A program made the translations under genes and the position numbers. A stretch of DNA of 64,000 nt from Macrostomum hystrix. Its lineage: Eukaryota > Animalia > Platyhelminthes. The notes beneath the pieces were generated by a model. That model saw only the letters and a program-made list of their open reading frames with translations, was not told the origin of the DNA and searched no databases. Position 1 is the first letter of the stretch; the number at the start of each line of letters is the position of its first letter. This document shows positions 19,201-53,478 of the stretch, one piece after another. The stretch covers positions 5,518,001 to 5,582,000 of the forward strand of contig CATNEN010000034.1 in the NCBI GenBank assembly GCA_950097015.1, written 5' to 3'.

Positions 19201-19768
19201 CTGGACTGTGCTGCGCGTGCCAAAGAAATGGATTGGCCGTATCATTGGCAAGCAGGGTAAAACTGTGCGCAATCTCCAGGGCACCTCCGGTTGCATCATC
19301 AACTTGCCGGACGAGCCTGACCTGCCAGAGGAACGCGATCAGAGCCTGGAGATCTACGGAAATTTCGACTCGACCCAGCTGGCCCTCACAAAGATTCGCG
19401 CCCTGATTAGCCAGGCTCAGTCTCTTTATCACCAACAACTGGCCGCTTCGATGGCCTACCCAATGCCGATGCCTGCTATTCACGGCTATTCCCCTATGCC
19501 GCAGATTTTGCCGGCTAGGCTGGCCCCTTATCCGGGCGGTCCAACTCGCGCCGAATACATGCCGCAGCCAGCGATGCTGCCAAATATGCCCGCTTATCAG
19601 CCGGCTCGAGTGCCACCGTTGCCGCGGCCGCAGCTGCCTCAGCATATTCCTCCGCGTGATGCCCAGCTCCCAGCCGCTGTACCTGCCTCCGCAGTGCTAA
19701 ATGGACACGGCGTCCTACCCGGTAGTAGCGGCGACAATAAGCAAGCTAGTCCACCAACGCAGGCCTAG
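16252..19768 (+). CDS. IGF2BP: IGF2BP/Imp-like RNA-binding protein (one RRM + four KH domains, ~766 aa)
   Basis: Exons 16252-16926, 17531-17625, 18071-18187, 18272-18483, 18567-19768 join in frame. KH motifs are YPLRVLINSDLVGAIIGKGGETIKEI, FCGRIIGKDGKNL, GAVIGSDGVSIKKI and IGRIIGKQGKTVRNLQ. The DRIITVKG segment and Pro/Gln-rich linkers resemble IMP proteins. Confidence 0.88.
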
Positions 19769-19821
19769 GATGCATGGCTAGTAAGTCGAATTTAAGGAAT
19801 TAAATCTTCGTAATCATAGAC

Positions 19822-20685
19822 TTGACTGCCTTCCTAATCATGATCTTGACTGTCTACCTAATCATGATCTTGACTGTCTTCCTAATCATGATCTTGACTG
19901 CCTTCCTAATTATGAACTTGACTGTCTACCTAATCATGATCTTGACTGTCTACCTAATCATGATCTTGACTGTCTTCCTAATCATGAACTTGACTGTCTT
20001 CCTAATCATGATCTTGACTGTCTACCTAATCATGATCTTGACTGTCTTCCTAATCATGATCTTGACTGTCTACCTAATCATGAACTTGACTGTCTACCTA
20101 ATCATGATCTTGACTGCCTTCCTAATCATGATCTTGACTGTCTACCTAATCATGATCTTGACTGTCTACCTAATCATGATCTTGACTGTCTACCTAGTCA
20201 TGATCTTGACTGTCTACCTAGTCATGATCTTGACTGTCTACCTAATCATGATCTTGACTGTCTACCTAATCATGATCTTGACTGTCTTCCTTATCATGAA
20301 CTTGACTGTCTTCCTAATCATGATCTTGACTGTCTACCTAATCATGATCTTGACTGTCTTCCTAATCATGATCTTGACTGTCTACCTAATCATGAACTTG
20401 ACTGTCTACCTAATCATGATCTTGACTGCCTTCCTAATCATGATCTTGACTGTCTACCTAATCATGATCTTGACTGTCTACCTAATCATGATCTTGACTG
20501 TCTACCTAGTCATGATCTTGACTGTCTACCTAGTCATGATCTTGACTGTCTACCTAATCATGATCTTGACTGTCTACCTAATCATGATCTTGACTGTCTT
20601 CCTTATCATGAACTTGACTGTCTTCCTAATCATGATCTTGACTGTCTACCTAATCATGAACTTGACTGCCTTCCTAATCATGAAC
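19822..20685. repeat. 24-bp minisatellite, 36 copies, with a duplicated 13-unit (312-bp) block
   Basis: Unit is cttgactgtctacctaatcatgat. The variant order in units 7-19 is repeated in units 20-32. The array starts about 54 nt after the Imp stop codon. Confidence 0.97.
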
Positions 20686-23600
20686 ATTTTATTTATTTAT
20701 GGTAGCTAAATTTCTTTAATGATTTTTTGCAGAGCGCTCTGCCAATTGCTGTCGAGAGATAAAATGAAAGAGAGAGAGCAGCCAATACCAAGAAGACGTT
20801 GCGGCAAAAAAGATTAATTAATTTCTCATGTTTCTGTTGTTTTGCTAGACCTCTCTAATGTCCGCGTTCTCAAATTTTGCATGCTGCATGTAGTGGCGCG
20901 CGCGACAGTCAATTGCGTTTCTCTTGCTTCTCAGCTGCTGCTGCAGGGCTCGCCTTAGTCTGCTCGATGATGGCACGGGGCTACCCCCGCAGAAGTCTTG
21001 GTGGAAACATATTATAATACTTATTAAAGTTTCGCTTTGCTTTTTTTCTTGAGTCTTTTGTTACGTTACTTATATATTTTTAGTTCATATTTTCAAGAGA
21101 GTCATTGTGCCAGGACTGTAGTTTGCTTAGATTCGCTTGGCGAGGAGTTTTGTTAAGCTGGTTGCTTTTCTTTATTACGTCATAAGCGGCGCTTGCGCCT
21201 AAGGAACGTTTGCGCTTGTTTTCTGTGCATTTTTTTCTGCGAGCGACTTTCAGGGATTTTTTCCCTTAACAAAAAACAGCGAACTGGTGATGCGTCCGTC
21301 TTGGGCTTGGGGTTGAATTTTGCGTATTTTCTTATTTCTTTTTTATTACTCTTTTTTACCACCGAACATGTTGTCAACAATGTCCCTAGTCGGCAAAACC
21401 TGCGTCTAGGATTTGACTCCGACCGATACGGCGCAGGCTATTTTGTTTTTTGGCAACTGAATGTTGTGTCCATTTTATTTTTCTTATCCAAATCTCTCCC
21501 TTCAATCCTGTCCTCTCTTTCATCCATGCCACTTAACTTCAATTCTTACTGCTTCACTATGCTTGCCCCATTTGGCTTCTAGTGTCGTTGAAGTCACTGC
21601 TCTTTACAGGTAAACTAATCCCAGTTACGGGTAAGGGGATCTTATCCCATTGTCATAATGGCACCCCTCCCATTCTCCTTGTTCCTGTTCCCTCCTCAGT
21701 GCTTCCAGTGGCTTCAGTCGCGGTGATGCAGGCTCTTTACCTATCACCTGCGACTTCTGCCATCACAAACGATCTTGGGCCTCATCGGTGTTAGGGATAA
21801 AATAAATTGTGATCCAGCATTGTCAGAAATTTGGGTTTTTCAATCAGAAAGTAGGGCGCCATTCGGTTGAACAGAATTTATTCAGCTTGCTCAGCTAGCC
21901 AACCAGCCTGCAGACTGGCTTCGCTGGCCAAACACAACAAATGTCAACTGTTTTGTTTGCTTTGATTATTTTCAAAGCTAATTAATTCAATTAAAGTATA
22001 TATTTATATTCTTTATTTTTGTTTCTTACCGTGTTTTTCTTTATTTGTGTTTTTTATTTGTTTTTTACGAGTTTTAGTTGCTTCTTTCGTACAGGAATTT
22101 CGGGCAGCCTATAGGATAACCTCTGAGTCCGGCACACACACACTAACACTCGCACCTACATTTGCAAAAGCGTGCTAAGAGAGACATTGTGAAGTTGAGA
22201 GAGTACCTATAAAGCATTGAAGCATTGTATTTTATATTTGAGTTAACTTTTTGTCCTGCAGACTCTTCTTGGTCGCGCATATTTTTATTTCTTTTGTTGG
22301 TTTTTTTACTTTGAGAATTCTTAGTAAAATTGCTGTCTTTTTCGCGAACTGACGCTTTTTCTGTTTGCTGAGAGTTACCAAGCTAAATAATAACGGAAGT
22401 AATAATTTTAAGAGACTAATAATTCACCAGTTATCCCTTTCTGCAGTCTAAAACCAACCAACAGCTTACCGTATAACATGTAACTTTTTTAGTTTCCAAG
22501 CCGCCTTACTATGCTCTAAGTTGATATCTGTCTCTCGCTGCTCCACACAGTACTAAACAAGGCCCGCTTGTCGATCACTAGAACATCTACCAGCGCAACA
22601 GCAAACATATCAAAACATATTATGCTTTTTCTCCATGTTTTATTCACGTCGCCCGTCTATGCCGCCGTCGCTGCCAGTAAGCCAGACAAAATGAAACACT
22701 TGTCAAGTTTAGCCATAGAGATTATATTCGCCAGCTTCCTATAGACGTTTTTTCAGCTTTGCATCCGCGTGATTTTCCCCATCCCCAGACCCATTCGTTT
22801 GCTGTGTTCTACTTTACCTACTTCATCCTTAGTTTGTTTATTAAATATATTACACTTAATATGTTAGCCGAACTTTTTAGTCGGACTTTTGCGCCCCGCG
22901 TCTCCGGCCTTACTTTATCAGCCCGCTCATGTACTGTTCTACCACTTTTTTAACTTATCTGTTTGTGTTCTTTTCATTTTTTCTTAAATTAGCAAACTGT
23001 GCAAATTAGGCCTTTTTGTTACAAACTGATAAAGTTGTCTCTGTGTGACCCTGGTTTTTACAGTTATTTCTACTTCTTTTCGTCCACCTGTTTTGCTAGC
23101 ACTACGCAGTGTGTATTGAAATAGTGTCTTTTTGCTATATTATATATAGTTATATATATATACATATATTAGTTCTATTTCACTTTTCAGCCTTTGCTTT
23201 ATCTTGCAATCTGTGTTGCTTTCTATGCAGTTCCTTTTTTGTACTTGCTTTTCTCTATCAGACTGTCGGACTACTTTATCTCGACTTCTATCAAAACAAT
23301 TCGTAAGTCTCTTAATTGATTGTATTAATTAATAAGATCATAGATTCTTAAGATTTAGCTAAAAATGAGCCTATAGCTTTTACTTAAAATGTGAAATCAT
23401 AAAATATAGACTCAAAGCCAGTTATATCTTTTAGCTTCCGGTTCACTTTTTTCTAGAAAAAATATAATCGGCTCATTAAAAAAACTACTAAAAGTCGTAA
23501 CCATCGCACAGTCAGTTCCTTTGTAATCCCCGTTTTTTTGTTAAAATTAGCTTCTTTTTTTTCAAGTTTAGCCTGCTCTTTACCGTCATTTTTCTGTTTT

Positions 23601-27878: not shown

Positions 27879-29903
27879 CCTCGCTCCAACCTGGCGAGCT
27901 GCAACGCTCAGTGTCAGCGGCCGTCTGCGGTGCCGGCCTCCTGTTTCGACAACGGCGGCATCGGCGGCGGTAGCAACGATGAACTCAACGGAGAACTGCG
28001 TGACTTCATCACCAGGTTAGACGAGACGCCAATCGTGTATGTAAGCAAGCCACCGAAGCTGCTGCGGGATCGCTACCTAGTTGACGAACTGCTGGGCGAA
28101 GGCTCCTACGGCAAGGTGAAGCTGTGCGTCGATAGGGAGACGGGCGACCGACTTGCTGTGAAGATTGTGACACTCCGGCTAGTCCGCAAGATTCCCCAGG
28201 GCTTGGAGACCGTTGAGCGCGAGGTTGCTGCCATGCGCCAACTGAAGCACGTCAACACTGTCCACCTGTACGCCGACTTCTCGGACGACAGCGGCCAAAA
28301 GCGCTACCTGGTGATGGAGTTCGCCGTCTGCAGCATCCACGACCTGCAGGCCAAAGGTGTGCCGCTGGATGCCGAGCACTTCCGCTGCCTGCCGGAGTCG
28401 CAGGCGCGTCACTACTTTGCACAGCTGCTAGACGGTGTCGAGTATCTTCACAGCCTGCGCATTGTGCACAAGGACCTCAAGCCCGGCAACTTGCTGCTAA
28501 CAGCCGAGCACATTGTCAAGATTACAGACTATGGCGTCTGTGAGCAGATTTCGCCTGGTGCTCAGGATGACACCATCACCGGAACCCAGGCAACGCCAGC
28601 AATTCAACCACCTGAGGCGAGGATTAATTGTTTATTGAAAAATTATATATAATTAGTAGTTGGTATATATAAATCTTGCGTGGCGTATCTAAAAAAGGCG
28701 TACACTCGTACAGACCATAGACTGGGCTTCGCCACTCCCTATACCTAGACTGGGGATGGGAGCCCCGCGCGCCCTAAGTTACTCCAGTTACTACTGTTAC
28801 TACAGTTACTGTTACTACAGTTACTACTGTTACCAATTTAACAGTCAATGTAGAATTAAGTGTCTTTTTTTCGGACAAAATTTTTCTAGTGGAGTCGTGA
28901 ATCGAACCCTCGACCTTCAATTCGTGAGTCCGACGCTCTTACCACACTATGCTACAACCCCCCTTTTAATATCCTATATGCCCAAATATCCATCCACAGC
29001 TGAATAATTATGTAGTAAATTACAAAACGAGGGATTTGAACTCAGGATCTCTCGGTTTGGAATCCAGAGCTAAAATTCAATGGACTATTTGCTTGATAAT
29101 GTGAAAAGAAGTGGACTCCAAACTCAAAACGTTTCCCATAGACCAAACCTACTATTAAAAGCGTGGTTTAGCATGCCGCCTGTAGGACAAAGGAGTAATT
29201 GACACTTTAATATGATAAGATTTGCCGCTAACACTCGAAGGTCGCTGACGGCAGCAAGCAGTTCTCCGGCTTCCGATTGGACGCTTATTGTGTTGGAGTT
29301 TGCTTATATTTCATGGTTTGCGGCCGGGTGCCCTACCGCGAGAAAAATGTGCTACTAATTTACGAACGCATAGCGGAGGGTCGCTACACCATCGAGGCCT
29401 GGGTTAGTGAGGCCTGCCAACAGCTCATTCGCGCCCTCATGGCCTACAAGGCGGCCGATAGGCCGGATCCGGCCGGAGCCAGGCAGTTCGACTGGCTCCG
29501 TTCGGCCAGCGCTGGCGCCGTTGTGCCTGAGCCGGACTGGGTTAGTCTAGAGACTGTCTGCGACGTCGAAGACGCCGCGGTCACCGTCGCTAGAATTCGT
29601 CAGGCTTTCGATGACCGATGGCAGAGCAGGTCGCAATACGAGACACACGGCCTCAGCATGACATCGGAGGCTGCGGAGTCTGCTGAGCGTCAGCACCAGG
29701 CCGTAGACGACATTCTGGCCACGGACGATGACGACGACGATGAGGCTGGCATCGACTTCCAGGCTGGTGGCGGTCCATCCAGCGCCTCCGAGCACAGCGG
29801 CGCCGCTGAATCGCCGCCAACTCCGCCGCCGCCGCCGCCTGCTCCGTCCGCGCCTCCGTCGGCCGGTGTCGGTCGCAAGAAGCGGCGATGCTGTCTGTCT
29901 TAG
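27879..29903 (+). CDS. STK11: LKB1/STK11 (PAR-4)-like Ser/Thr kinase; start codon not resolved
   Basis: Exons ~27879-28616 and 29241-29903. Motifs FITRLDETPIVY, LLGEGSYGKVK, HKDLKPGNLLL, QPPE|VADGSKQFSGF and a C-terminal polybasic CaaX (RKKRRCCLS*) parallel LKB1. The intron must be GC-AG. Confidence 0.82.
28886..28960 (-). mobile_element. Degenerate tRNA-like SINE head (family 3) in the kinase intron; second copy at 48231-48296
   Basis: The minus strand reads tagcatagtgtggtaagagcg...actcacga...ggttcgattcacgactcca (A and B boxes). The same actcacga...ggttcgattc.cgactcca occurs at 48231-48296. The stems are mismatched. Confidence 0.6.
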
Positions 29904-34679: not shown

Positions 34680-34688
34680 TATTTAAAG
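34680..34688 (+). promoter_or_regulatory. TATA-like box upstream of secreted protein A
   Basis: tatttaaag lies ~80 bp before ATG 34761 in otherwise GC-rich DNA; paralog B has a box at a similar spacing. Confidence 0.4.
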
Positions 34689-34760
34689 CGCGCGAGGAGG
34701 CCCGATTGTAGTACAGTCGATAGTGTTTGCTTCACAACAGCGATTCACCCGGACAATCCA

Positions 34761-36305
34761 ATGATACCGTCACGGCTGTGTCTGCTCTGCCTCTGCCTCG
34801 GGCACCTAGGTGTACAGGCCACGTCAGTGCACGAGGTAGCAATCTCGGTGCGAAGCGTGAAGTCTATTGTCTACCGAGGCATGCAAGTCTCAATCTTTGA
34901 GCACATTGAAATGCCTCGCCGCTACTTTTTTCAACCGCTTGGCTTTCTCGACGCCGTCTCAGCTCGACTTGTTGACAACGCTGATCTGAAAGCCACCGAG
35001 CTCAACTTCGACGTCTACCTGTGGACCGATGAGTTCATTCAACTGGTCAAGAGCCATTTCGCTGAGCCAAACTCTGTGGAGCTTCTGCCCCTAACTGAGA
35101 TAAGTTTGGCGTGGTCGAACCACGCTTCCAGTAGGCTCGGTGCTGGCTTCAATCGCACTTACCGCCTGCTTGATGAATGGAAGGACAGCGACAAGCCTCA
35201 CATGCGGAACACATTCTCCATCTTGTGTGGCAGACGGGACGCGTGCGATCGGCTGCTTATGAAGTTCAATCAGAGCAATGACTTGTTCAATCTAAGGTAC
35301 AAGATCCAGTGTGACAATACACAAAATCATACTATAACCGTGAGCGATTCCCACTTCAAGAATTCGCCCACCTTCGAGAATATGGATAAGTTCGGCTTGC
35401 TGCACGGAAGCAGCACGGTCATTATATCGGAAAAATCTGTAGACGAATTAGTCGACCAAGTGTACACAGCCGCACTGGTTGAGCTACAAAGTAAGATCGG
35501 GCAGCAACTAGCATCTGTTGATAGCCAATCTCGGCAAGCCGTCCTAACCGACCTGCATCATCGTCTTCGCTCCGAACAAGTGCACTCGCTGAGCGACAGT
35601 GTTTGGAAAACAAAAGTCTACTGGCCCGAGCGCCCGGGAAGCATTAGACCAGACAAACTGGCTGTCATTTTCAACAAACTTTTCAAGCAGGCTACCGAGC
35701 TTCCTCTCAAGGTGACGCTTCCCAACTCTTATTTATTGGCCTCAGCCGGAGAATCAATGCTGCCAGTGGACTTTGAGAAGCTCGGAAAATTTGTAAATCT
35801 TTACAGTGGCCAGGGCAAGGGCTCGGAGCCGCCAGTCGCGTCAGTTGATGATGTTCGGAAACTGGCAAAAGAACTAGGCAGCGACTCCGTTTGGAATGTC
35901 GAGAAGGGGCAATTTGCCCCGCCTTCAACTCTCACTTTCTTCAGCATCGACCTGCAGTCGATTCTCCGCCGCGGCATATTTCTGATGCGCGATTTGACAG
36001 TGCATTTCAAGGTGTCCCAGCACATGGACCCCGTGCACCTGCTGCCCAAGGACACGGAGTTCCAGAGCTCGCTATGGCAGCGCCACTTCGCTGGCTCATT
36101 CTGCATCCTGGCTAATCGGGGTGAGCCGCCGGGCATGCAGTGCCGCGTCCTCTCCTACCGGCTGCCAAGCACGTCATTGCAGCGCGAAAGCCGCATTAGA
36201 TACAACGGCGGCCACATTGGGCAGAACCACTTTTATCAGGTAAATCCTGATGAGTTCAGCTTCAGCGTCAAGATTTGCTGCACGAAAGATCTGGAGACTC
36301 CGTGA
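34761..36305 (+). CDS. Intronless secreted protein of unknown family, paralog A (514 aa)
   Basis: Long ORF with a signal peptide MIPSRLCLLCLCLGHLGVQA|T. It aligns with the 39115-40962 ORF outside that ORF's 99-aa insert, with many synonymous differences. Confidence 0.9.
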   Translation: MIPSRLCLLCLCLGHLGVQATSVHEVAISVRSVKSIVYRGMQVSIFEHIEMPRRYFFQPLGFLDAVSARLVDNADLKATELNFDVYLWTDEFIQLVKSHFAEPNSVELLPLTEISLAWSNHASSRLGAGFNRTYRLLDEWKDSDKPHMRNTFSILCGRRDACDRLLMKFNQSNDLFNLRYKIQCDNTQNHTITVSDSHFKNSPTFENMDKFGLLHGSSTVIISEKSVDELVDQVYTAALVELQSKIGQQLASVDSQSRQAVLTDLHHRLRSEQVHSLSDSVWKTKVYWPERPGSIRPDKLAVIFNKLFKQATELPLKVTLPNSYLLASAGESMLPVDFEKLGKFVNLYSGQGKGSEPPVASVDDVRKLAKELGSDSVWNVEKGQFAPPSTLTFFSIDLQSILRRGIFLMRDLTVHFKVSQHMDPVHLLPKDTEFQSSLWQRHFAGSFCILANRGEPPGMQCRVLSYRLPSTSLQRESRIRYNGGHIGQNHFYQVNPDEFSFSVKICCTKDLETP

Positions 36306-39042
36306 TTTACTCATGATAACTGAAGACTAAATTTGGTTGGCTGAAAATTGTCGTCGACTGAACTGATCCGTTTTTAACTAGGCAGCGATCTTCGCAAGAC
36401 ATGCTCTTAAAATTGATCGCCCAGCTCTCTTTAGTGCTTATGCACTTGGCCCTCGTCTGCCTCAATTTTTATGTAAAACTCTGGCAAAGTTTGCATCATT
36501 TTTTTTCGAAAGCTTTGCTTCGCTTATGTGCAAACGGACATTTTCACCTTTAAAGGAGCCGTGTGTGTCTGTTTTTGTTTTTTGGCAGTTCATTAAGCTC
36601 CGTTAGTTATCAGCATATTATTTGTTTTTATCTTCAAAAGCCATATTTACTCGTAAACTTCATTATTTTCATTTCGGAGCAGTTGGCTGTATTGGTGTCC
36701 CAGATATAAAAACTTGCATATTGGCATTGGCTTGTGGCTAAGTTTCGAAATTATAATATTTGCGCAATACTTGTTTTGCTACCAATGCATCGATAGCTCG
36801 ACTGTTGTGTGAGAAATAATGATGGGTTTATAATTTTTTAGTTCGCAAAGAAATCTTTGCCTTCTAAAATGTTTTTCTACAATGAACATTCTACGCATTT
36901 TTATGCATCATCATGTAGCTGTTGTTTCACAGCAATGCGATTAATGAGAGCTCGCCTGTCAGATTTGGATTATTGCGCAAGCAGCGATAAGCGCGCATTA
37001 TTGCCAGCCAGACTTGTTGCTGGCCCCATTAAGCAGCAGTGTTTGAAGTCAGCAAATGCAAATTGATGCAAAACGGCTGCTGCCTTCAGAAGGCAAGATT
37101 TAGGACCGATAGATAACGAAAAAGCAAAATTCACATCTAACATACATCACGCGGGAAAGCGTCAGAAAGTCGTGAATGTTTTTAGTTGTAAACACTGAGA
37201 GAATTGTAGGCTCTCGACCATCCTAATATAAGTTATGAATTGGCACTCTCTAGGAGTGCAACCGATGCTAAAGCAAGTTTTATTCTTTTCCTTCCACGGA
37301 CTAGACGAGGCTTATCGTGATAAAGCAACGCTTCCTTCCTATCAAAAGTGCATGTCTGGGCTCGTATGGAAAAGCAGACGGTCAACTGTCACTCAATCGT
37401 CATAATTTGCCCTAACCATTTCTTCCCATCACTTTCCTGATCATTATGGGTTGTTCTGTCACGTGCTAGGCGCTTCCAGACCCCCGTGGGTTTGCGAGCT
37501 GCGCATTGCTGTTGATTGGCAGTCGAGCATTCCTAGATGATGAAAGACTGACAGTTAAAATTTTTGTTTCCAAAAAAATCCCTTTGATCCTTTTAGCTTT
37601 AACCTGCTCCAGAGGTGCCAAACATTCGGTCTGCGTCACTCCTGATGCTTGCGGTGATCAGAGGCACAATGGCCCACTTGTTTATTGAAATGCGCCATGT
37701 TTACATAGGTGCATTCGTGTACCGTTCAGCCCATTCTCGTGACCTCATTATCCGTCATACTGCTTGTCCATCTGCCAGACATTGCTGCTACGGCAAAATT
37801 TAAGTGCGCTGTTAAGATTCTTCCGGGAAATTCGGCAGATCATAAAAATAAATCACGCTCCTGTGTCTATGGTGAGTTATTATTGAGAACTCGTTTGTAA
37901 AGCGACATTTTCCAGCGAATGTCGACTATTTTACACTATCGCTTGCCAATAAAAGTCGCGTCTCGCTTTTAAAAGCGGCTTCATCCAACAAACTGTCCCC
38001 AACAAAAACTGCACTGGCCTCAGTACTAACTTGAGGTCCATAAAAATATTAAAATGTCATTAGTCTGAAAGGTGACTGTCTGTGAGGGGGTATTTCTGGG
38101 CTAAGCATTCAAATCAGTGCAGTCTGTGGATCTCTGCTGCATATCAAACTCGCTGCGAGAGGTCCCAGGGCCAGCAGTTCTATGCGGAACAGTTTCATAA
38201 ATAAAAAGCAAATTGCCTGCCTTCCTTCGAGTGCGCTTAATCATTCGCGAGTTTCAACAGAATATGGTGCATCACATGACGCTCCCCCAGTTCCGATGCT
38301 GTTATTGATGCGAAGGAAAACTTTTCAGACACTTGCTGGTCCCTCGATCGAGTGGCTGCCATGAATATCATGCGGAACTTTGCAAACACCAGAGAAAATT
38401 CCCGAGGCCCTCTCTCTTTGCACTCTCTCAACCCAAGCAGACGCGGACGGGTGGCGTCATTAACAACAAGAAAAAGGGAACTTGGCCGGATCGTAAATGC
38501 AAACGAATCCGCCGGGACCACCCGGCGGAGTGAAGCTGAGCGGAAAGACTGAGACAGACATTGTTATTGGCGCTGGCGCCTCCCACCGAGATGAATATTG
38601 TGAAAGCTAGAATCGCGGGCACCATGCATTTCGACACCCGGATACCGGCCACAATTTCTCTTCAGCCCCAATCCGGCCAGACAAGACTAAACCAGCTTTC
38701 AGTCAGCCAGTCTTCCCATTCTCCCCGCTGTGCACCGCGGGCCCCCAGATCCCGCATATGGGAGCTGGCGTCTGGCGTCAATTAAACATTCCCCGGTTCT
38801 TCTATATTCCAACTCTAAGCAATTGAAACCAAGTGCGCCTATCCTAGAAACTCGTGAAATTCCAACACTTCAGCTTCGACCAAGGCTCGCGCAACCATAG
38901 GAGGGTGTTATACAAGGAGCCACTCGTGATGAATTCCACACACAGCCATGCAGGCAACTATGTAAGTTGCTAATCACGTGATCCTGGCATAACAACCCGG
39001 ACAATCTTCAAGGCATTCCACGCAACACACCCGAGACCGATG

Positions 39043-39050
39043 TATATAAG
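39043..39050 (+). promoter_or_regulatory. TATA box upstream of secreted protein B
   Basis: tatataag lies ~70 bp before ATG 39115. Confidence 0.45.
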
Positions 39051-39114
39051 CAGCTGGCTTGAAGAAGAGAGAGGCAGGCCTTTTGCATAGAGCCCACAAT
39101 TCCAAGAAAAAGTC

Positions 39115-40962
39115 ATGATCGACTGTCGGCTATTTGGCCTTCTTATTCTCTGCCTCGGGCAACTCGGAGTTAACGCAACATCGGTACACGAGGTCGCGAT
39201 CTCAGTGCGAAGCGTGAAGTCCATTGTCTATAGAGGCATGCAGATCTCAATCTTTGAGCACGTTCAGACACCGAAGCGATACTTCTTCCAGCCGTTGGGA
39301 TTCCTCGACTCTGCATCCGCGCGTCTGGCTGAGAATCCCAATTTCAGCAGAACGGAGCTGCACATCGATGTCTACCTGTGGACGGACGAGTTCATCCAGC
39401 TTGTCGAGAGCCACTTTGCAAATCATAAGTCTGTAGAGCTGCTGCCCCTGACTGAGCTCAGCCTGGCGTGGTCAGATCGCGCATCCAGATGGCTAGGTGT
39501 GAACTTCAATCGAACGTACGAACTGCTCGACGATTGGAAGGACGGAGACAAGCCTCACATGAGGAGCACATTCACAATTTTCTGTAAAAGACGGGACGCG
39601 TGCGAGCAGCTGCTTATGAAATTTAATAGTAGTGATGAAGCCATCCACAACCTGTTTGACCTGAGGTACAAGATCCAGTGCGACAATTCGCGCAATTTCT
39701 CTCTGACCGTCCGCAGCTCCCATTTCCTGCAGTCGTCCGTCTTCCAATACCTAGACCGGTTCGCATCTCAGCGCTCGGGTGAGAGGCAGGTGATCGTCTC
39801 CGAGCAGACGGTGGACGAGCTGGCTGACCAGGTGTACACAGCCGCGCTGGTTGAGCTGCAACACGTAGTGAAGCAGCAGTTCACCTACGTTGACAGCGAA
39901 TCACGCAGAGCTATCTTGGCCGATCTGCACCGAAACTTGCGCTCCAGTCCGATGCACTCGCTGAGCGACTTCCAGTGGCGAAACTATGTCGCCTGGCCGG
40001 CTGACCGGCTAGACATGCGCCCGGACAAGCTGGCGCACATGTTTAATGCTCTTTTTAGCGCCTCCGAGCGGCCGCTGTTTGTGCAGCTGACGAGCGCCGA
40101 TCGAATGCATGAAGTCCGCGAGACGCTGCCGGCCACCGAGTTTGCCAAAATCGACACCTTTGTTCGCCGCTACACTCCGCGGAGACCAACTGACACGGTG
40201 CCTATCCCGGTGGCCGAAGTGCGAGACCTATCGCTGGCCTTGTTCAGCCCTGTAGCCTGGAACGCATCCGCCAAAAGGTTTATTCCGTCGCCGAATAGCG
40301 TCATGTTCCGCATCAATATTGAGCGCATCAAGAGCGAAGGCACTCTGTTGATTCGCGACGCTCTCGTCTTCTACAAGGAGACCGCCCACCGCGACCAGGT
40401 GACCCCGTTGGATCGCTTTGACGGCAGCGTCGAGACAGCCTGGCGTACGCAAGCCGACCAGCTAGATGCCAAGCTGCAGCAGCTGCAGCAGAAAGTTAAC
40501 CTGCTGGAAACCAGCTTGAGTCGAGTTGCCGGCGAGCTCGATAGCTGGACATCTATCTACGCTCCCAACAATCGTGGCCGCGGCGGTGTTAACGTCCGCA
40601 GCGGCGACCTGCCGCCTCTTGAGTACTACCCGCCGCCGGAACCGGGAGCAGCCTCGAAGGACCTCTCCGACCTGCAACGCTCCCTAGCCGCGCTGGAGGC
40701 CCGCGTGGCCGGCCTGGCCGTCAACCGGTCCCGGCAGTACCAGCCGCGGTTCGCCGACTCATTCTGCGTCCTGGCCAACCGGGAGAATCCACCTGGCATG
40801 TCCTGTCAGATACTGTCGATGATCATACCGAAGAAGTCGCTGCGGCACAGTCCAATATTTGACAGGCGAGTGCGCTACCAGGAGGGCAGTATCGGGCAGA
40901 GCCACCTGTCCAGTCTGAACTCAGACTTTGTGAGCTTCAGCTTGAAGATCTGCTGCACTTGA
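39115..40962 (+). CDS. Intronless secreted protein of unknown family, paralog B (615 aa, extra coiled-coil segment)
   Basis: Long ORF with a signal peptide MIDCRLFGLLILCLGQLGVNA|T. It is a clear paralog of 34761-36305 and shares the C-terminal F..SFC.LANR..PPG...KICCT module. Confidence 0.9.
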   Translation: MIDCRLFGLLILCLGQLGVNATSVHEVAISVRSVKSIVYRGMQISIFEHVQTPKRYFFQPLGFLDSASARLAENPNFSRTELHIDVYLWTDEFIQLVESHFANHKSVELLPLTELSLAWSDRASRWLGVNFNRTYELLDDWKDGDKPHMRSTFTIFCKRRDACEQLLMKFNSSDEAIHNLFDLRYKIQCDNSRNFSLTVRSSHFLQSSVFQYLDRFASQRSGERQVIVSEQTVDELADQVYTAALVELQHVVKQQFTYVDSESRRAILADLHRNLRSSPMHSLSDFQWRNYVAWPADRLDMRPDKLAHMFNALFSASERPLFVQLTSADRMHEVRETLPATEFAKIDTFVRRYTPRRPTDTVPIPVAEVRDLSLALFSPVAWNASAKRFIPSPNSVMFRINIERIKSEGTLLIRDALVFYKETAHRDQVTPLDRFDGSVETAWRTQADQLDAKLQQLQQKVNLLETSLSRVAGELDSWTSIYAPNNRGRGGVNVRSGDLPPLEYYPPPEPGAASKDLSDLQRSLAALEARVAGLAVNRSRQYQPRFADSFCVLANRENPPGMSCQILSMIIPKKSLRHSPIFDRRVRYQEGSIGQSHLSSLNSDFVSFSLKICCT

Positions 40963-45817: not shown

Positions 45818-46101
45818 TCAGCCGAGGAAGCCGGGCGAACCTCGTGACGGTGCCGGCTGCTGCAGCCGGTCGAGGTCGGACTCCAGAGGCTGGCCAAACA
45901 TGTCCGCTGCCGAGAACCGCTTGGCCACCTGTCGAGCAGCGTGGAGACGACGCAGCACCTCGGCCAGGGTGCTCGCTTCTTGATCGTCCACATCCATATC
46001 GGGGGCTTCGGAGAAGTCGACCGCCGGGCGAGCCGGTTTAGCTTGCGTCGAGTGCGCCAGAGATGCTAGGAGCACAGCCGCGACTGGAATACGATTCGGA
46101 G
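45818..46101 (-). CDS. Possible exon of a small secreted or peptide-precursor gene
   Basis: GC-rich island with the open frame ..PNRIPVAAVLLASLAHSTQAKPARP...ARQVAKRFSAADMFG...RGSPGFLG*. It has a hydrophobic stretch, a dibasic KR and a terminal Gly. There is no in-frame ATG and the upstream exon is uncertain. Confidence 0.35.
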
Positions 46102-46201
46102 CTAGCTAACTTGGATTATTGTTGCGGCTGTGTTCTATTTGTCACGTCGGAGATCCTACTTGATGGATCCATTTAGAGCTCATTTTGTAAATCGATTTTT
46201 T

Positions 46202-46890
46202 AGTTTGATTTGGTAGATTGGGTACCGATTTGTTAGATTAAGTACTGATTTGGTAGATTGGGTACTGATTGGGTAGATTGGGTACTGATTGGGTAGATTG
46301 GGTACTGATTGGGTAGATTGGGTACTGATTTGGTAGATTGAGTACTGATTTAGTAGATTGAGTACTGATTTGGTAGATTGGGTACTGATTTGTTAGATTA
46401 AGTACTGATTTGGTAGATTGGGTACTGATTTGTTAGATTAAGTACTGATTGGGTAGATTGGGTACCGATTTGGTAGATTGGGTACCGATTTGGTAGATTG
46501 GGTACTGATTTAGTAGATTGAGCACTGATTTGGTAGATTGGGTACTGATTTGTTAGGTTGAGTACTGATTTGTTAGGTTGAGTACTGATTTGTTAGGTTG
46601 AGTACTGATTTGGTAGGTTGAGTACTGATTTGGTAGGTTGAGTACTGATTTGGTAGGTTGAGTACTGATTTGGTAGGTTGAGTACTGATTTGGTAGGTTG
46701 AGTACTGATTTGGTAGGTTGAGTACTGATCTGATTTGGTAGGTTGAGTACTGATTTGGTAGGTTGAGTACTGATCTGGTAGGTTGAGTACTGATTTGGTA
46801 GGTTGAGTACTGATCTGGTAGGTTGAGTACTGATTTGGTAGATTGGGTACTGATTTGGTAGGTTGAGTACCGATTGGGTAGATCGGGCAC
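46202..46890. repeat. 20-bp minisatellite array 1
   Basis: Unit gtactgatttggtagattgg or gtactgatttggtaggttga. Confidence 0.96.
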
Positions 46891-48488
46891 TGATTTAGAC
46901 GCTGGCCATGGTGCCTGGAGTCATGTAATTTTTACCTGCCGCAGCCAGCTCTGAGCAATTTCGGGTCAACCAGGTGATCTGGTTGCAGTAGATTTTATTG
47001 CTTTTTAGAGAATTGGGTCTCATTACAACCACCTGGTCCAATAGCTGCTTAATCTTCCCTTGATATCACGTTTCTACTCTCTATTGAATTTCACTTTCCA
47101 CTTACGAACTGATTATCATCGGTAGGCATGAGAGCCAGAATGTTGATTTGCGTCTCTGATTCGCGCAGTCTAACTGGTAAAGCTGATGAACTCGATGAAT
47201 CAATCGTATTTTTTAGCTACCAAAAATGCAATGGAGTCCGTCGCTTAATCTTGTGCTTTATTATGCACGTTCAGTTATGAGTGCCACGAGTAGGTGAGTT
47301 AGATATAGATGGAGATTGTAGATGAAGATGCAATTATGAAAAATCAAACTTGTCTTAGGGAAAGCTGAATATGCTTCTCTTTGACGCTAGTTCATTAACC
47401 TCTTAAGTTAATGTTCTAATTTAAAAAAATCATACCTACCCTATTTGAGCCAGATGTGCCCAGCTGCAGCAATTGAGCGATGCTTACGGCTTAAAGGCTG
47501 CGTACGGCTGTTTAGTCCATGGACTAGGGGGGAGGCGAAGACCAGCCTAAACAGGAGGACAACCAAGCCATTTTGCCGCCCGTTTTTATACTAAGAGGGT
47601 GGGAAATTCCCCTGAAGGCGCTGAAAATTTCATTGGCAGCACCTGAATGCTAACAGCGCTGGCTGGGGTTGACAGACTAGACGATGGTGTCCTGTGGTTG
47701 AGCTGCACCTAGTATTTATGTTTCAGCAGTGAAATTGGAGTGTCCATAGTGGCCTATTTTCAAATCTTGTAGCCCTTAAAGTTCCAGCAAATCCGTCAAG
47801 ATAAATGTAGGTGACCACCGAAGACGGAGATGATGCAGGCACATTCGGGTGACATGCTGATAAATTTTGAAGGCCTGGCAAGGCCGCACTAAGGCGCAGT
47901 GCTAATTTGTGTATAGGGGTGAATGAAATACACTAGCTCTTATGGGAAAAAATGACTTTCGGCCAGAAACATTGAATATCTCGACGGTTTGAAGAGCTGG
48001 CGACTTGATTATTTTTTAGAAGTTGCGCAACAAAAAGTTGGCCCGTGTTCTTGAGTTTCGTGTGCTTGCGTTGCTCCGTTCGGGTGCAGCACAAAAATTG
48101 TCAGGGGGGATTTTTCAGGGGGAGGGAAATTCCCCCCCTGTCTGGTAGTTCTACTGTTAGTTACCTCAGCCTATGCTGGTACCGACTTAACAAGTGTCTT
48201 TAGCATAGTCTCTTGCTAAAGGACTCAAACTGGAGTCGCGAATCGAACCCCGAACTCCAAGTCGTGAGTCTTACGCTCTATCCACTAGGCTAAAGCTCCC
48301 TTGCAATTATTGTTATAAAATCGCAGGCATTCATGTTTGTGGCACGCGTGGAGATCGCATGCCTGCTTTCAAATGCACTTTTAGCACTGAGGCGACGTGG
48401 TTGAATTATTAATTTGGAGAGATGAAGGTATATTGCGTGAGGCTCTGCTTGAAATTTATTGAATTTCCTATATACGTAAGGCCTATAT

Positions 48489-48524
48489 TTAGGGTTAGTT
48501 AGGGTTAGGGTAAGGGTTAGGGTT
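48489..48524 (+). repeat. Short interstitial TTAGGG-like tract
   Basis: ttagggttagttagggttagggtaagggttagggtt. Confidence 0.7.
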
Positions 48525-49451
48525 GAGTGTTGTTGCCAAATTTAAGGATGTTTGGTTTTGATGGGATTAAATTGGCAGAGCGAATTTCCCATCGTCTTTC
48601 CTTCCTCCTGCCTCCCCGAAACGGTTACAGCTGTCATTATTCAGCTTGCTACGGCTGAACATAAGCCGGTCGTTTTCAAATTGAGTGTTTGAATTTCGAT
48701 CCGATCTGGTAATGCGATACAATATCATGAATTAATTTTCTAATCTAAAGAGCATCTCGAATGCTAATTAAATGCAGATCGGGTTTATTTAAAAAGTTCG
48801 ACCTCGAATTAAACAGACCAAGTCAGTTCTAAAGTGCTCCTCTAAAGAATTAAAAACTTTCTCTAGACTTACAAAAATCGACTAGTTTAATAATGAATGT
48901 TGTAACTGACGTTTTCGACTGTCAATCTGACAAAGGAAGGCTGGGCAAGCGAAGGTGAGGCAGATTGGCGTGCAAGTATTCCCGAGTCCATCACTGCCCT
49001 ATCGGGACAGTTTTTCCACTGTCTGGCTGGAGTCAATTGTGTTAGGAAAACTGTAGAGAAAATTGAGCACTGATTCACATGCAGACAGCGCTCGTACAAA
49101 GGACTCACAGAGTGAAAGCTAGTGAGGCTGAATAGATGAATTGAAGTACTTTTATAATGCGATTTCTCGGCTCTCTGGGAACCTGTCTAATTCCCAAAAA
49201 CTATGGCTTCAAATGAAGTATTGATATTCATTTAATAGAAACAGAAAATTATATTTATAGAAATTGCACTTGGCTCACTTGGGCCAGTTGTACAGCCAGT
49301 GGCAAAGCTACAGTCTTACGCGGCGCTTTCAAAGCCTGTGTACAGTTGTCTAGTCCATAGACTGGGGAAATTAAGTAACTGGTTCAAGGACACAGATAGC
49401 TTCAGAAGTCTCTCGAGCTCTAGTAGATTAGCTAATTAAATAGTTTTAGGG

Positions 49452-50998
49452 ATATAGGTACTGATCTGGTAGATTGGGTACTGATTTGGTAGATTGGGTA
49501 CTGATCTGGTAGATTGGGTACTGATTTGGTAGATTGGGTACTGATCTGGTAGATTGGGTACTGATTTGGTAGATTGGGTACTGATTTGGTAGATTGGGTA
49601 CTGATCTGGTAGATTGGGTACTGATCTGGTAGATTGGGTACTGATTTGGTAGATTGGGTACTGATCTGGTAGATTGGGTACTGATTTGGTAGATTGGGTA
49701 CTGATCTGGTAGATTGGGTACTGATTTGGTAGATTGGGTACTGATCTGGTAGATTGGGTACTGATTTGGTAGAATTGGGTACTGATCTGGTAGATTGGGT
49801 ACTGATTTGGTAGATTGGGTACTGATCTGGTAGATTGGGTACTGGATTTGGTAGATTGGGTACTGATCTGGTAGATTGGGTACTGATTTGGTAGATTGGG
49901 TACTGATCTGGGTAGATTGGGTACTGATTTGGTAGATTGGGTACTGATCTGGTAGATTGGGTACTGATTTGGTAGATTGGGTACTGGTAATTGGGTAAGA
50001 TCATGGTAGATTGGGTACTGATCTGGTAGATTGGGTTGATCTGGTAGATTGGTACTGATTGGTAGATTGGTACTGATCTGGTAGATTGGGTACTGATCTG
50101 GTAGATTGGGTACTGATTTGGTAGATTGGGTACTGATCTGGTAGATTGGGTACTGATTTGGTAGATTGGGTACTGATCTGGTAGATTGGGTACTGATTTG
50201 GTAGATTGGGTACTGATCTGGTAGATTGGGTACTGATTTGGTAGATTGGGTACTGATTTGGTAGATTGGGTACTGATCTGGTAGATTGGGTACTGATTTG
50301 GTAGATTGGGTACTGATCTGGTAGATTGGGTACTGATCTGGTAGATTGGGTACTGATTTGGTAGATTGGGTACTGATCTGGTAGATTGGGTACTGATTTG
50401 GTAGATTGGGTACTGATCTGGTAGATTGGGTACTGATTTGGTAGATTGGGTACTGATCTGGTAGATTGGGTACTGATTTGGTAGATTGGGTACTGATTTG
50501 GTAGATTGGGTACTGATTTGGTAGATTGGGTACCGATTTGGTAGATTGGGTACCGATTTGGTAGATTGGGTACCGATTTGGTAGATTGGGTACCGATTTG
50601 GTAGATTGGGTACCAATTTGGTAGATTGGGTACTGATTTGGTAGATTGGGTACTGATTTGGTAGATTGGGTACCGATTTGGTAGATTGGGTACCGATTTG
50701 GTAGATTGGGTACCGATTTGGTAGATTGGGTACTGATTTGGTAGATTGGGTACTGATTTGGTAGATTGGGTACTGATTTGGTAGATTGGGTACTGATTTG
50801 GTAGATTGAGTACTGATTTGGTAGATTGGGTATCTATTTGGTAGATTGGGTACCTATTTGGTAGATTGGGTACCTATTTGGTAGATTGGGTTGGGTTTGG
50901 TAGATTCGATACCGATTTGGTAGATTGGGTACCTATTTGGCAGATTGGCTGGGTTTGGTAGATTAGGTTGGTAGATTGGGTACTGATTTGGTAGATTA
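49452..50998. repeat. 20-bp minisatellite array 2 (same family and orientation as 46202-46890)
   Basis: Unit gtactgat(c/t)tggtagattgg, ~77 copies. Confidence 0.97.
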
Positions 50999-51502
50999 GA
51001 AAAACGCCTACAAAACGTGGCCAGGTTTTTGACAGTTATAATGACGAAGACATTTCGGCACGCTAGTAACTCTCTATGCACTTACCCAGCAAAGCGGTTG
51101 ACCAAGCCTTTTGCCAAATCATCCTTTGACTGTGAATGAGCCTCGGTCTAGTCGGCGCTGGAATTGAGTATTTTTTATGGCAGAGGTCCTGCAGCAGGCT
51201 TGTCCGCACTGCTCTTGCTGAGATTATGAGCAAAGAGCACCGGACGGGGGATGGGCTAACCGTTGTAAATGCCTCACGGCCTAAGGGACAGACTGGCTCG
51301 GAGTTGGTTCAGCCAATCTCACCTCACCGCTCTAAAACTGAATGACTGGCCCATTTAAGGGTTGGTCAGGCCTATTGAAACTACGATCTAGTTCTGTCTA
51401 TGTAATCAGATTTTAATTCAATTGAGCTGATCTCAAGGATTTGCTGTTGGATGCTAATCAAGGATCCTGATATCCACCGAACCGTGCTTTTATCAACCGT
51501 GA

Positions 51503-51877
51503 GGGGGGTCGGTGGCAGAGCGTTTAACGCGTTTGCCTCCCCCAACACGGTCCCTAAGTTCGATTCCGCGGCGAGGCCACATTTATTTGGGGCGCAGCCG
51601 CGGAGAGAAGGCTTGGGGCTTGTCGTTCAATTTACGCCCTTGAGGGCCAACCGCCAAGGCACAGTGAAAGTGTACACTGCCTGAAGATGAGAAAGTCAGG
51701 GCAGATGTGCACACCTGTGTGAGCGTGTGCATGCCTGCGTACAGTATCTGTGTGCGTGTGTGCTCAGGAGTCAGCAAAGTTTATAGAATTGCCTCCTTGC
51801 TGGCTGCGGGTCTAGTGTCACTAAATGATGTGCCATTGCAAGCAGCCCTCCTGCAATTATTATTATATTATTGTTAA
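51503..51877 (+). mobile_element. Full-length SINE family 1 copy
   Basis: Highly similar to 42784-43150. The TSD is ttatcaaccgt (51490-51500) / ttatcagccgt (51878-51888). Confidence 0.9.
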
Positions 51878-51977
51878 TTATCAGCCGTAGCGAGATGAAA
51901 AAGTTATTTCTCGGAACAACTTCGAGTCGAATTCTGAAAGTACTACTACATAGTAGGCTATATCGAGTATTAATTTT

Positions 51978-53478
51978 TTAGCTTCTCTCTGTCCGCAGCT
52001 CCGCTTCATCCGGCAGCCTTGAAAGGAGGCCACTGACCGCTCGCAGCGGCCAGGAAGCTATTCGACGACCGCCGAGCCGATCGCCAACAATCCAGGCTGC
52101 AGCCAACAGCCGCATCAGAGTCGCCAGAGGCACCAAGAGAGCCAATGCCGCCGTGGCTGCTAGGAAAGCCAGAGCCAAAGCTGAGAGCCGAGGCTCCGCG
52201 GTCCAATCCGCCAGCCGCCGCAGCCGCCAGCAGAGGTCGCCAGCGAGAGCCAGGCCAGACACAACTCGAGGCAGGGCTTCCGGCTTCTCAGTCAGCGTTG
52301 CAGTCTCTTCGCTTTGCCTTTTCAGCGCCGCCAGGGCTGTGGGCAGAAAGCGAGTCTCGGCCACTCGGTAGGCAATGCAGGTCAGCATCAGGGCTGCCAG
52401 AGTGGCTGGCAGCAGCCGAGTCTCGAAGTTGTACACCACTGCCAGGCGACAAGCCGTGGCAAGGTGTGCTGAGACACCCTTGCTCTCTGGACCAATGTCG
52501 AGACAAAATGCGCCAAAGCTGATGACAGTGTCCGTGACGTCGGCAATAATGTGAGCGGCGCTCCACTGCTGCTCCTGCCGGAGGCGTCGTCGAAGCTGTA
52601 TGAGCGACGTCGAAGGAGGACGGAGCGTCCGCAGCGCAGCCCGCATCGGATTGTATACTAGGTCCAGCTCCAGCTGCACAGCACCGCGCGGCGCGAGCCG
52701 GTGCCAACGTTTAGCACCGTTCACCAGGCGAGTCAGTCGAATTGGCGCAGCGTGCCACTCTGTCGCTGATGTCGTCAGGGATAGAAGCAGAGGCTCGTGC
52801 AGATCAGACACTGGAAGCTCAAGAGTGACCGTCTCGCTGATACCGATGCCGGAGCCGATACTGCTGCTGCTTGCAATGATGCCGCTGACTCGGTGGACGG
52901 ATCCGAGGCAGGCGTGCAGGCGGATCTGGCCCGCAGGCGCTACCGCTCTAAGACCATCGGCGCGCAAAGCCTTGGATGTGAATTTAAACGGTTAATATAG
53001 TTGACATACTGAACTGCCGTCCGCACTTATCTTTAGAAATGGCCATTTCATGGAGCCTTCGGCATTATACTCAAGACAAATATACATAATACTGTCATAC
53101 TCGTACTGTATATAATAGTATACTGTCAAATTATTTTTCTGTGAGCCCGTCGATCAGCCCGCCCTCGTATATTTTTATTCGTTTTGTCATTTTATTTTTC
53201 AAGAGAACTGATAATAGTGATCAACAAAATATAGTAGATCTTGTACGCGTATGAAGCCTTTATTTACACACCCCAGCCTCCCTCACCTTGACCCTGAGCC
53301 AGCCAACATCCTCTAGACAGTTGAAGGTCCGCCGCCAGCCGTAACGCTCTACAAGTTCGTCTCTGCCACGTCGGCTGAACGGGAAGTCGTTGTCTTCTGT
53401 TGTCCTCGTCTTGTCTTCAGACTCAGCAAGCGGCTCTTTTCCTTCCTGAGGCTTCTTGAACGGTTCAGACTGTAGCAT
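51978..53478 (-). CDS. MCTP: MCTP-like protein (last C2 domain + transmembrane/PRT_C region); 5' exons not resolved
   Basis: Exons ~53478/53469-53287 and 52970-51978, with a phase-0 GT-AG intron 53286-52971. ELVERYGWRRTFNCLEDVGWLRVK|ALRADGL, LELDLVYNPMRAALRTL, hydrophobic hairpins and LLSRLPDEAEL parallel the MCTP C2C and C-terminus. Confidence 0.72.

Follow-up and report, generated by a model that had tools for sequence, protein, structure and literature searches.

Structure of the gene pair

A 64-kb window of Macrostomum hystrix DNA (the whole stretch analysed here, on contig C34 of a 220-Mb genome in 42 contigs) contains a tandem pair of genes, here named gene A and gene B, that encode predicted secreted proteins with a large N-terminal domain in common, hereafter the head. 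The two co-oriented, single-exon open reading frames described in the initial annotation of this DNA were recovered, with every motif quoted there. The features of the pair, numbered as positions in the window like all coordinates below unless another contig is named, are as follows.

34680 to 34687, + strand: TATA-like box TATTTAAA, 81 nt 5' of the gene A ATG (read in the sequence)
34761 to 36305, + strand: gene A, coding sequence of 514 amino acids (aa) in one exon, stop included (open reading frame list and colinear RNA-like contigs)
34761 to 34820, + strand: signal-peptide-like N-terminus of gene A, aa 1-20 (sole hydrophobic 19-mer maximum in the protein)
34821 to 36050, + strand: conserved N-terminal "RPDK" domain of gene A, aa 21-430 (aligned to gene B and 45 distant relatives in alignment A2)
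36063 to 36302, + strand: C-terminal 4-Cys module of gene A, about aa 435-514 (50% identity to the gene B module)
36306 to 36752, + strand: 3' untranslated region of gene A (RNA-like contigs of assemblies X5 and X6 both stop at 36752)
39043 to 39049, + strand: TATA-like box TATATAA, 72 nt 5' of the gene B ATG (read in the sequence)
39115 to 40962, + strand: gene B, coding sequence of 615 aa in one exon, stop included (open reading frame list and colinear RNA-like contigs)
39115 to 39174, + strand: signal-peptide-like N-terminus of gene B, aa 1-20 (hydrophobicity maximum; AlphaFold helix 2-16, low confidence at 18-24)
39178 to 40422, + strand: conserved N-terminal domain of gene B, aa 22-436 (conserved columns; AlphaFold model m204861b2e3b1, predicted local distance difference test score, pLDDT, 90.8)
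40426 to 40752, + strand: stalk of gene B, helices aa 438-482 and 513-546 around a linker, aa 483-512 (AlphaFold secondary structure)
40753 to 40959, + strand: C-terminal 4-Cys beta module of gene B, aa 547-615, with Cys 551, 564, 613 and 614 (BLASTP against A, Cys positions and model)

BLASTP aligned the two proteins at 55% identity across 436 aa (E 2e-162) and at 50% identity over the last 78 aa (E 2e-21), in agreement with the shared domain of about 420 aa and the short Cys-containing C-terminal module that had been noticed earlier. About 100 extra residues lie between these shared parts in gene B and form its stalk, the linker of which is rich in Pro and Gly and modelled at low confidence; residues 436-482 gave weak Pfam matches of the coiled-coil type. 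Gene A has no stalk, and its 4-Cys module follows the domain almost immediately, without an intervening coiled coil. The C-terminal module of gene B was modelled as strands between residues 551 and 614, with pLDDT of about 57-87.

A hydrophobicity scan found that the N-terminal leader is the sole hydrophobic segment in each protein, as in a signal peptide, and so the signal peptides claimed initially are predicted here as well. There are three N-x-S/T sites in A and seven in B. The cysteines of the mature proteins are residues 157, 163 and 189 (gene B numbering) in the large domain, plus four in the C-terminal module. The TATA-like boxes of the initial annotation, placed there 70-80 bp upstream, were found in front of both genes.

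Transcription

Parts of the window are present in eight public runs from two studies. The X5 and X6 assemblies are 43-50 Mb in size, compared with 220 Mb for the genome, and their pattern is transcript-like; RNA is not named as the source of the runs in their records. Gene A is represented by one contig of about 2.0 kb (X5 and X6) that extends from just upstream of the ATG to 36752 and is colinear with the genome from 34985 to 36752, with no internal joints. The X5 version begins about 254 nt before 34985, near 34731, which is downstream of the TATA-like box. Gene B is represented by one contig of 2.2-2.5 kb (X5 and X6), from 39008 or 38738 past 40975, likewise colinear and with no internal joints. 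The contigs of both genes have fairly high depth in whole-animal material. Both genes are apparently transcribed, and neither is spliced. Lack of expression, which the initial annotation had named as evidence that would count against it, was not what we found, as transcript-like contigs span both genes, in runs that are not recorded as RNA.

The starts of the gene B contigs differ (38738, 39008, 39095 and 39114) and do not fix the transcription start. In the 2.8-kb spacer between the genes, X5 contains short, low-depth contigs at 36896-37066 and 38856-39034, no X5 or X6 contig was placed at 37067-38737, and the X6 gene B contig that starts at 38738 begins well upstream of the TATA-like box. 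The spacer contigs and the 38738 start suggest minor upstream transcription or read-through. A single contig joint that appeared to go backwards was rejected as a mapping artefact, in which the 5' coding part of gene A had been aligned to its paralogue B with 18 mismatches.

A family of proteins in small invertebrates

Pfam searches with both proteins (E<=1) returned only weak coiled-coil noise in B and left the large domain unmatched. Among PDB sequences there was nothing useful for gene B, and the sole match to the family profile was a designed protein (E 0.26). Literature searches retrieved no papers on the Macrostomum lignano gene identifiers or the LOC identifiers of other relatives, and general searches retrieved no description of the domain. 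The designation of the family as unrecognised therefore stands in Pfam, among PDB sequences and in the literature searched, and the Pfam and PDB sequence searches gave no confident match to a housekeeping family, which had been named as a result that would speak against the initial annotation.

An exhaustive phmmer search with gene B across 1.84 billion representative sequences found 51 proteins at E<=1e-3, and all of the matches that carry a name are from animals and annotated as uncharacterized. Most alignments cover query residues ~20-320 and some extend to ~410-465, at identities of 19-29% except for two M. lignano proteins at 61% and 40%. The best protein matches of the pair are in M. lignano, at 81% (P0001 with gene B) and 63% identity; the closest M. 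lignano relative of gene A is P0002. The other sources of the family are the acoels Symsagittifera and Convolutriloba, the bdelloid rotifers Rotaria, Didymodactylos and Adineta, the tardigrade Paramacrobiotus, the nematode Plectus, and Daphnia. A search from a Daphnia member recovered at least 145 clusters at E<=1e-5, the named ones being from D. pulex, D. pulicaria, D. galeata, D. magna and D. sinensis. A word-index profile search with A2 recovered at least six proteins, and the A2 profile detected the window genes in the M. hystrix genome at E 2.4e-96 and 7.2e-92, both being members of A2. By these sequence matches, the domain defines an unnamed family that is spread patchily among small invertebrates of at least six animal groups. 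The earlier view of the pair as a novel system in its own right was not borne out, since A and B are diverged members of this wider family.

Conservation in the multiple alignment extends over all ~410 residues of the domain. In gene B numbering, P60 and P303 are invariant, and P111, W141, C163, W288, W294, R302 and D304 are nearly so; P60, P111, W141, C157/C163, W288, W294, R302-P303-D304 and N311 are 81-100% conserved in 47 sequences, and all of them are found in A and B. The flatworm clade departs from the rest at SVFW (YVAW or KVYW) and at W.GE.F.PKP (W.AS..F.PSP), and Daphnia sequences read SVFWN.DNYRPDK. Hydrophobicity profiles of A, B and most relatives show a leader or a membrane anchor immediately ahead of the domain, as for extracellular proteins: a hydrophobic leader starts most homologues, and in some tardigrade members an N-terminal membrane anchor replaces it.

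Several names attached to family entries in UniRef were rejected. "Vitellogenin", "TGF_BETA_2" and "VWFA domain-containing" were unsupported by the Pfam scan. P0001 is named BLTP2/Fmp27_GFWDK, but the Fmp27_GFWDK Pfam model matched none of 49 family members, P0001 included, nor A or B.

In Paramacrobiotus metropolitanus, several members lie on one 470,536-bp contig (LOC129597506, -507, -552, -565 and -566), so that tandem arrays of the family recur in other phyla. The members P0006 and P0009 share four contigs in one ENA assembly.

Stalks and tips

Behind the domain, Pfam identified a variety of C-terminal tips: the phage-tail Collar domain in rotifers, Link (Xlink) in a tardigrade, an NHL propeller in Adineta, a C-type lectin domain in D. 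magna, and C1q in most of the named Daphnia matches. Many Daphnia entries are named after long coiled coils, for example "interaptin-like" or "synaptonemal complex protein 1-like". These results, together with the Daphnia motif above, bear out the resemblance, named in the initial annotation, to Daphnia proteins with a YRPDK motif and varied C-terminal domains.

The tip of the flatworm proteins is of another kind. The isolated C-terminal modules had no Pfam match at E<=10, and the C1q domain (PF00386) matched neither A nor B at E<=1 nor the isolated modules at E<=10. Among the family members that were fetched, the small 4-Cys module is specific to Macrostomum. The M. hystrix genome has it in three genes only, each time behind the N-terminal domain.

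Judged from these sequences, the family combines a constant head with a variable stalk and a swappable tip. The modular design of scaffold, variable stalk and variable tip that had been proposed from the window alone is thus recognizable across the family, in that C-terminal domains differ between relatives; within the pair, the stalk is in B only.

Predicted structure of the head

A domain-only AlphaFold model built with 47 aligned sequences had a mean pLDDT of 90.8 and a predicted template modelling score of 0.70. It contains long beta-hairpins at residues 160-179 and 389-407 and a helical cluster. Weak matches to Ig-like sandwiches (Kir cytoplasmic domains, FnIII and adaptin ears; Z<=4.7) involve residues ~36-168 plus ~390-410, a pattern that suggests a sandwich core into which helices are inserted at about 176-389. 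The head is therefore predicted to have an Ig-like beta-sandwich core, a helical insertion and one conserved Cys-x5-Cys pair.

The structural comparison with AlphaFold and Foldseek that the initial annotation recommended, with pore-forming, MACPF or other folds in mind, gave no convincing PDB match. In Foldseek searches of the PDB the full-length model had no match, and the best domain-only match was at E 0.027, with none at E<=0.001. With the full-length model, the wide VIA-align search returned coiled-coil matches only, in the stalk part. The domain-only search of 48,161 representatives reached at best Z 6.0 (8yt8_C, a dystrophin-glycoprotein-complex chain, 88 residues), which falls below the stated background of Z 7-8, and a second look gave Z<=4.7. 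In the ESM Atlas, the domain-only shape search stayed at template modelling scores (TM) of 0.39 or less, the feature search with gene B 20-440 had no usable match, and all scores for the domain of Daphnia P0052 were <=0.84, the range of chance. The head fits no solved structure convincingly; the structure-search tools warn against reading the lack of a match as proof of a different fold.

The sole significant structural match of the head came from viral models (BFVD). It is A0A7S7YF07, an uncharacterized protein of similar length (417 aa) from Medusavirus stheno T3, an amoeba virus, matched by Foldseek at E 2e-13 and probability 1.00 over 448 aligned columns; the runner-up viral match was at E 0.04. 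Identity to the head is 11%, TM is 0.42 and the root-mean-square deviation is 11.4 A, so that the match appears to be partial, or the orientation of subdomains to differ. The viral protein is a probable, unconfirmed relative of the head domain.

Proposed function

The closest described proteins are those of Daphnia annotated as "C1qDC1" or "C1q and TNF-related protein-like" (D. pulex C1qdc1, P0173; D. pulicaria LOC124352561, P0052). They are homologous to the flatworm proteins over the ~410-aa N-terminal domain, with phmmer E values of about 1e-3 against gene B and identities of only about 17-21%, and they share the motifs RYF..P, W..E, F..C.....C, W.SVFW/YRPDK and W.GE.F.PKP. Like gene B, and unlike gene A, they have a long helical stalk after the domain, and they have a signal peptide, as predicted for the flatworm proteins. 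They end in a C1q globular head (PF00386), however, whereas the flatworm proteins end in the orphan 4-Cys module of about 70 aa, and in the tree the flatworm clade sits on a very long branch.

Collectins, proteins of the C1q family and other oligomeric soluble pattern-recognition proteins resemble the pair in layout only: a signal peptide comes first, followed by a helical stalk, which makes oligomers in those proteins and may do so in gene B, and then by a ligand-binding domain at the C-terminus that differs from one paralogue to another; lineage-specific tandem expansions are common to both. Their N-terminal regions are short and Cys-rich or collagenous, whereas here the constant part is a large globular domain, and Pfam found no collagen repeats, C-type lectin or C1q domain in the window genes. 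The layout of A and B is that of a known, modular, secreted recognition type of protein, with a head domain absent from family libraries and from solved structures.

We propose that proteins A and B are secreted, can be N-glycosylated, and would act outside the cell as modular binding proteins. The stalk, where present, would make oligomers, the C-terminal tip would bind a target such as a glycan, a microbial surface or a matrix surface, and the conserved head would give the proteins a common function, either effector activity or anchoring. The leader, the globular head, the helical stalk and the ligand-binding tips of relatives suggest an extracellular binding protein whose tip chooses the target, and the tandem, lineage-specific expansions suggest the same. 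The parallel in layout with collectins and C1q-domain proteins makes humoral recognition or defence the most likely role. Gene structure, transcript-like coverage, membership of the family, domain architecture and distribution are shown by the analysis. Secretion, oligomerization, binding and immune function are properties that we infer for A and B, and immune recognition is plausible. We give the whole proposal, secreted modular binding proteins with humoral recognition or defence as the most likely role, a probability of roughly 0.5.

Several points weigh against it. For the flatworm tip, an orphan module, no ligand-binding relatives are known, and gene A lacks a stalk entirely. A homotrimer prediction with three copies of gene B 436-615, covering stalk plus tip, scored 0.27 against a mark of 0.32 and counts neither for nor against the proposal. 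Expression of A and B was seen in apparently unchallenged whole-animal material, in runs not formally recorded as RNA. Daphnia c1qdc1 is treated in the literature as an immune marker by analogy with other C1q proteins only (PMC8993723, PMC11336676), and the immune label of the Daphnia relatives rests on the C1q domain, which the flatworm genes lack, so it is not transferable to them.

Second in likelihood, though rather unlikely, is that A and B are instead structural or secretory products. They would then be components of mucus, a role that the initial annotation also named, or of egg shell, adhesive secretion, seminal fluid or extracellular matrix, and the head would serve in self-assembly or in anchoring to the matrix and not as an immune effector. 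In favour of this are the predicted secretion, the potential for glycosylation and the Cys residues of the proteins, the fairly deep contigs in whole-animal material, and the presence of Link, C1q and NHL tips in matrix proteins as well. Members come from small animals of aquatic or limno-terrestrial habitats, and many of these animals produce resistant eggs; a Daphnia member was found in a screen for helmet morphology (PMC11336676); and, as reproductive and secretory products usually do, the C-terminal parts show fast evolution and lineage specificity. A and B lack the repeats and low-complexity bulk typical of matrix and adhesive proteins, however, and the head is modelled with confidence as a compact globular domain. 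Expansions like that of the Daphnia clusters, which are large, lineage-specific and furnished with lectin-like tips, are also more typical of recognition repertoires.

A broader version of the recognition hypothesis, which we consider doubtful, is that the ~410-aa head is an undescribed fold that serves as a common effector or signalling/anchoring module in the humoral recognition repertoire of invertebrates, combined with interchangeable tips (C1q, C-type lectin, Link, NHL, Collar or the flatworm Cys module) that direct it to different targets, and that this fold has been exchanged with giant viruses of amoebae.

The head might also be a harmful effector, pore-forming or enzymatic, that the tip aims at prey, microbes or competitors, in line with the toxin role suggested in the initial annotation. 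Many pore-forming toxins consist of an effector fused to a lectin-like targeting domain, long beta-hairpins are combined with a helical cluster in the head, the R-P-D residues are invariant together with other conserved polar residues, and no known fold explains the domain. The likeness to lectin-targeted pore-forming toxins (MACPF/CDC, aerolysin-like) is nevertheless one of idea only, that of an effector plus a carbohydrate-binding domain in secreted invertebrate proteins, with no similarity in sequence or fold: no MACPF/CDC, aerolysin or other pore-former fold was among the Foldseek and VIA-align matches of the head, nor was there an actinoporin, ClyA-like or Cry match, the best values being those given above, and an aerolysin-bearing Atlas cluster scored 0.77, within the range of shuffled proteins. 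No amphipathic or hydrophobic helices stand out, the near-invariant residues are mostly Trp, Pro and Cys and look structural, and membrane-anchored tardigrade members suit a receptor better than a toxin. We regard a toxic or enzymatic effector as improbable.

Origin of the pair

The M. hystrix genome encodes at least six members of the family: the window pair, one on contig C30, two in tandem on C38, and one on C37. The C30 paralogue has an intron of ~435 nt between the stalk and the C-terminal part, and introns interrupt the domain itself in the C37 gene and in one of the C38 genes; these intron-containing paralogues were matched exon by exon. The three members at C38 352898-358702 (- strand) and C37 1394644-1397873 (+ strand) are of a more canonical sequence type (SVFWNP..RPDR).

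In a quick maximum-likelihood tree, sequences grouped largely by animal taxon. Gene A paired with M. lignano P0002 and gene B with P0001, indicating that the A/B split predates the split from M. lignano, and the stem of the clade of A, B and the C30 gene was very long, at 2.13 changes per column. At third codon positions, A and B have an identity of only about 0.4-0.55, compared with amino-acid identity of 65-88% in the first 200 residues, which is the signature of an old duplication under purifying selection. The sequences thus indicate that A and B are old, intact tandem duplicates maintained by purifying selection.

Gene conversion between A and B was considered and rejected, as the third-position identity is uniformly low. 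The M. lignano pair is different: the first ~207 residues of P0001 and P0002 are identical and the rest differs, that of P0002 being gene A-like, which suggests recent 5' gene conversion in M. lignano, or else a chimeric assembly or gene model. The window pair has no homogenization of this kind.

Most neighbouring genes contain introns, in line with the contrast drawn in the initial annotation. To the 5' side of the pair lie a multi-exon gene for a KH/RRM RNA-binding protein (16252-20709, + strand) and a protein kinase domain split over at least two exons (27930-28652 and 29277-29903, + strand). From this contrast it had been suggested that the pair arose by retroposition or horizontal transfer. 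A pattern scan with one or two peptides from the Daphnia/tardigrade sub-alignment A3, a weak test, found no relatives in 185,579 bacterial and archaeal (GTDB) genomes, and the same scan found none in IMG/VR. P0016 (940 aa, from a 4.4-kb metagenome contig), named "microcystin-dependent protein" for its Collar domain, nests inside Rotaria in the tree; rather than a bacterial homologue, it is most probably a rotifer gene sampled in a metagenome.

Retroposition, or horizontal transfer from a bacterial or viral source, would account for the missing introns and is in keeping with the intronless state of A and B beside such neighbours, with the fold predicted to be shared with Medusavirus stheno A0A7S7YF07, and with other members that are also single open reading frames on genomic contigs (e.g., P0006), but it is very improbable given the other members in the genome, with introns in the C30, C37 and C38 paralogues, the taxon-wise tree with an A/B split older than that from M. 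lignano, the empty bacterial, archaeal and IMG/VR scans, the purely animal origin of the named matches in the exhaustive search, where even the bacterial-style P0016 falls among rotifers, and the TATA-like promoter that each gene has of its own, with no poly-A remnant or flanking repeats noticed (no systematic search for them was made). Intron loss within an old animal family accounts for the intronless pair, and a horizontal origin is not needed because intron-bearing paralogues are present in the genome and the tree follows animal taxa.

Elsewhere in the window, a rhodopsin-type G-protein-coupled receptor is encoded by a single exon (59884-61335, - strand). Positions 46001-52000 have a strong positive GC skew (+0.25 to +0.33) and a negative AT skew. 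A 393-aa open reading frame at 49432-50616 (- strand) drew several unrelated Pfam names, with no accepted stretch, and looks like low-complexity or repeat sequence.

Significance for the family

This analysis delimits a large extracellular domain that family libraries lack, with no Pfam model and no solved relative. In Daphnia, the head is the unannotated front part of "C1qDC" proteins, and most of each family protein has never been annotated, while c1qdc1 is in use in ecotoxicology as an immune marker (the name is shared with P0173; whether it is the same gene was not checked). A confident model with no PDB match and one giant-virus match makes the head a good target for structure determination and for the definition of a new domain family. 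M. lignano permits RNA interference and in situ hybridization, so that a first set of functional data on the family could practicably be obtained from the flatworm pair and its M. lignano orthologues, Mlig030455, Mlig006920 and the P0001 gene. If A and B prove to be components of a matrix or secretion, the outcome would be a useful but ordinary annotation; if the head is an effector with swappable lectin tips, the family would represent a new type of invertebrate recognition molecule.

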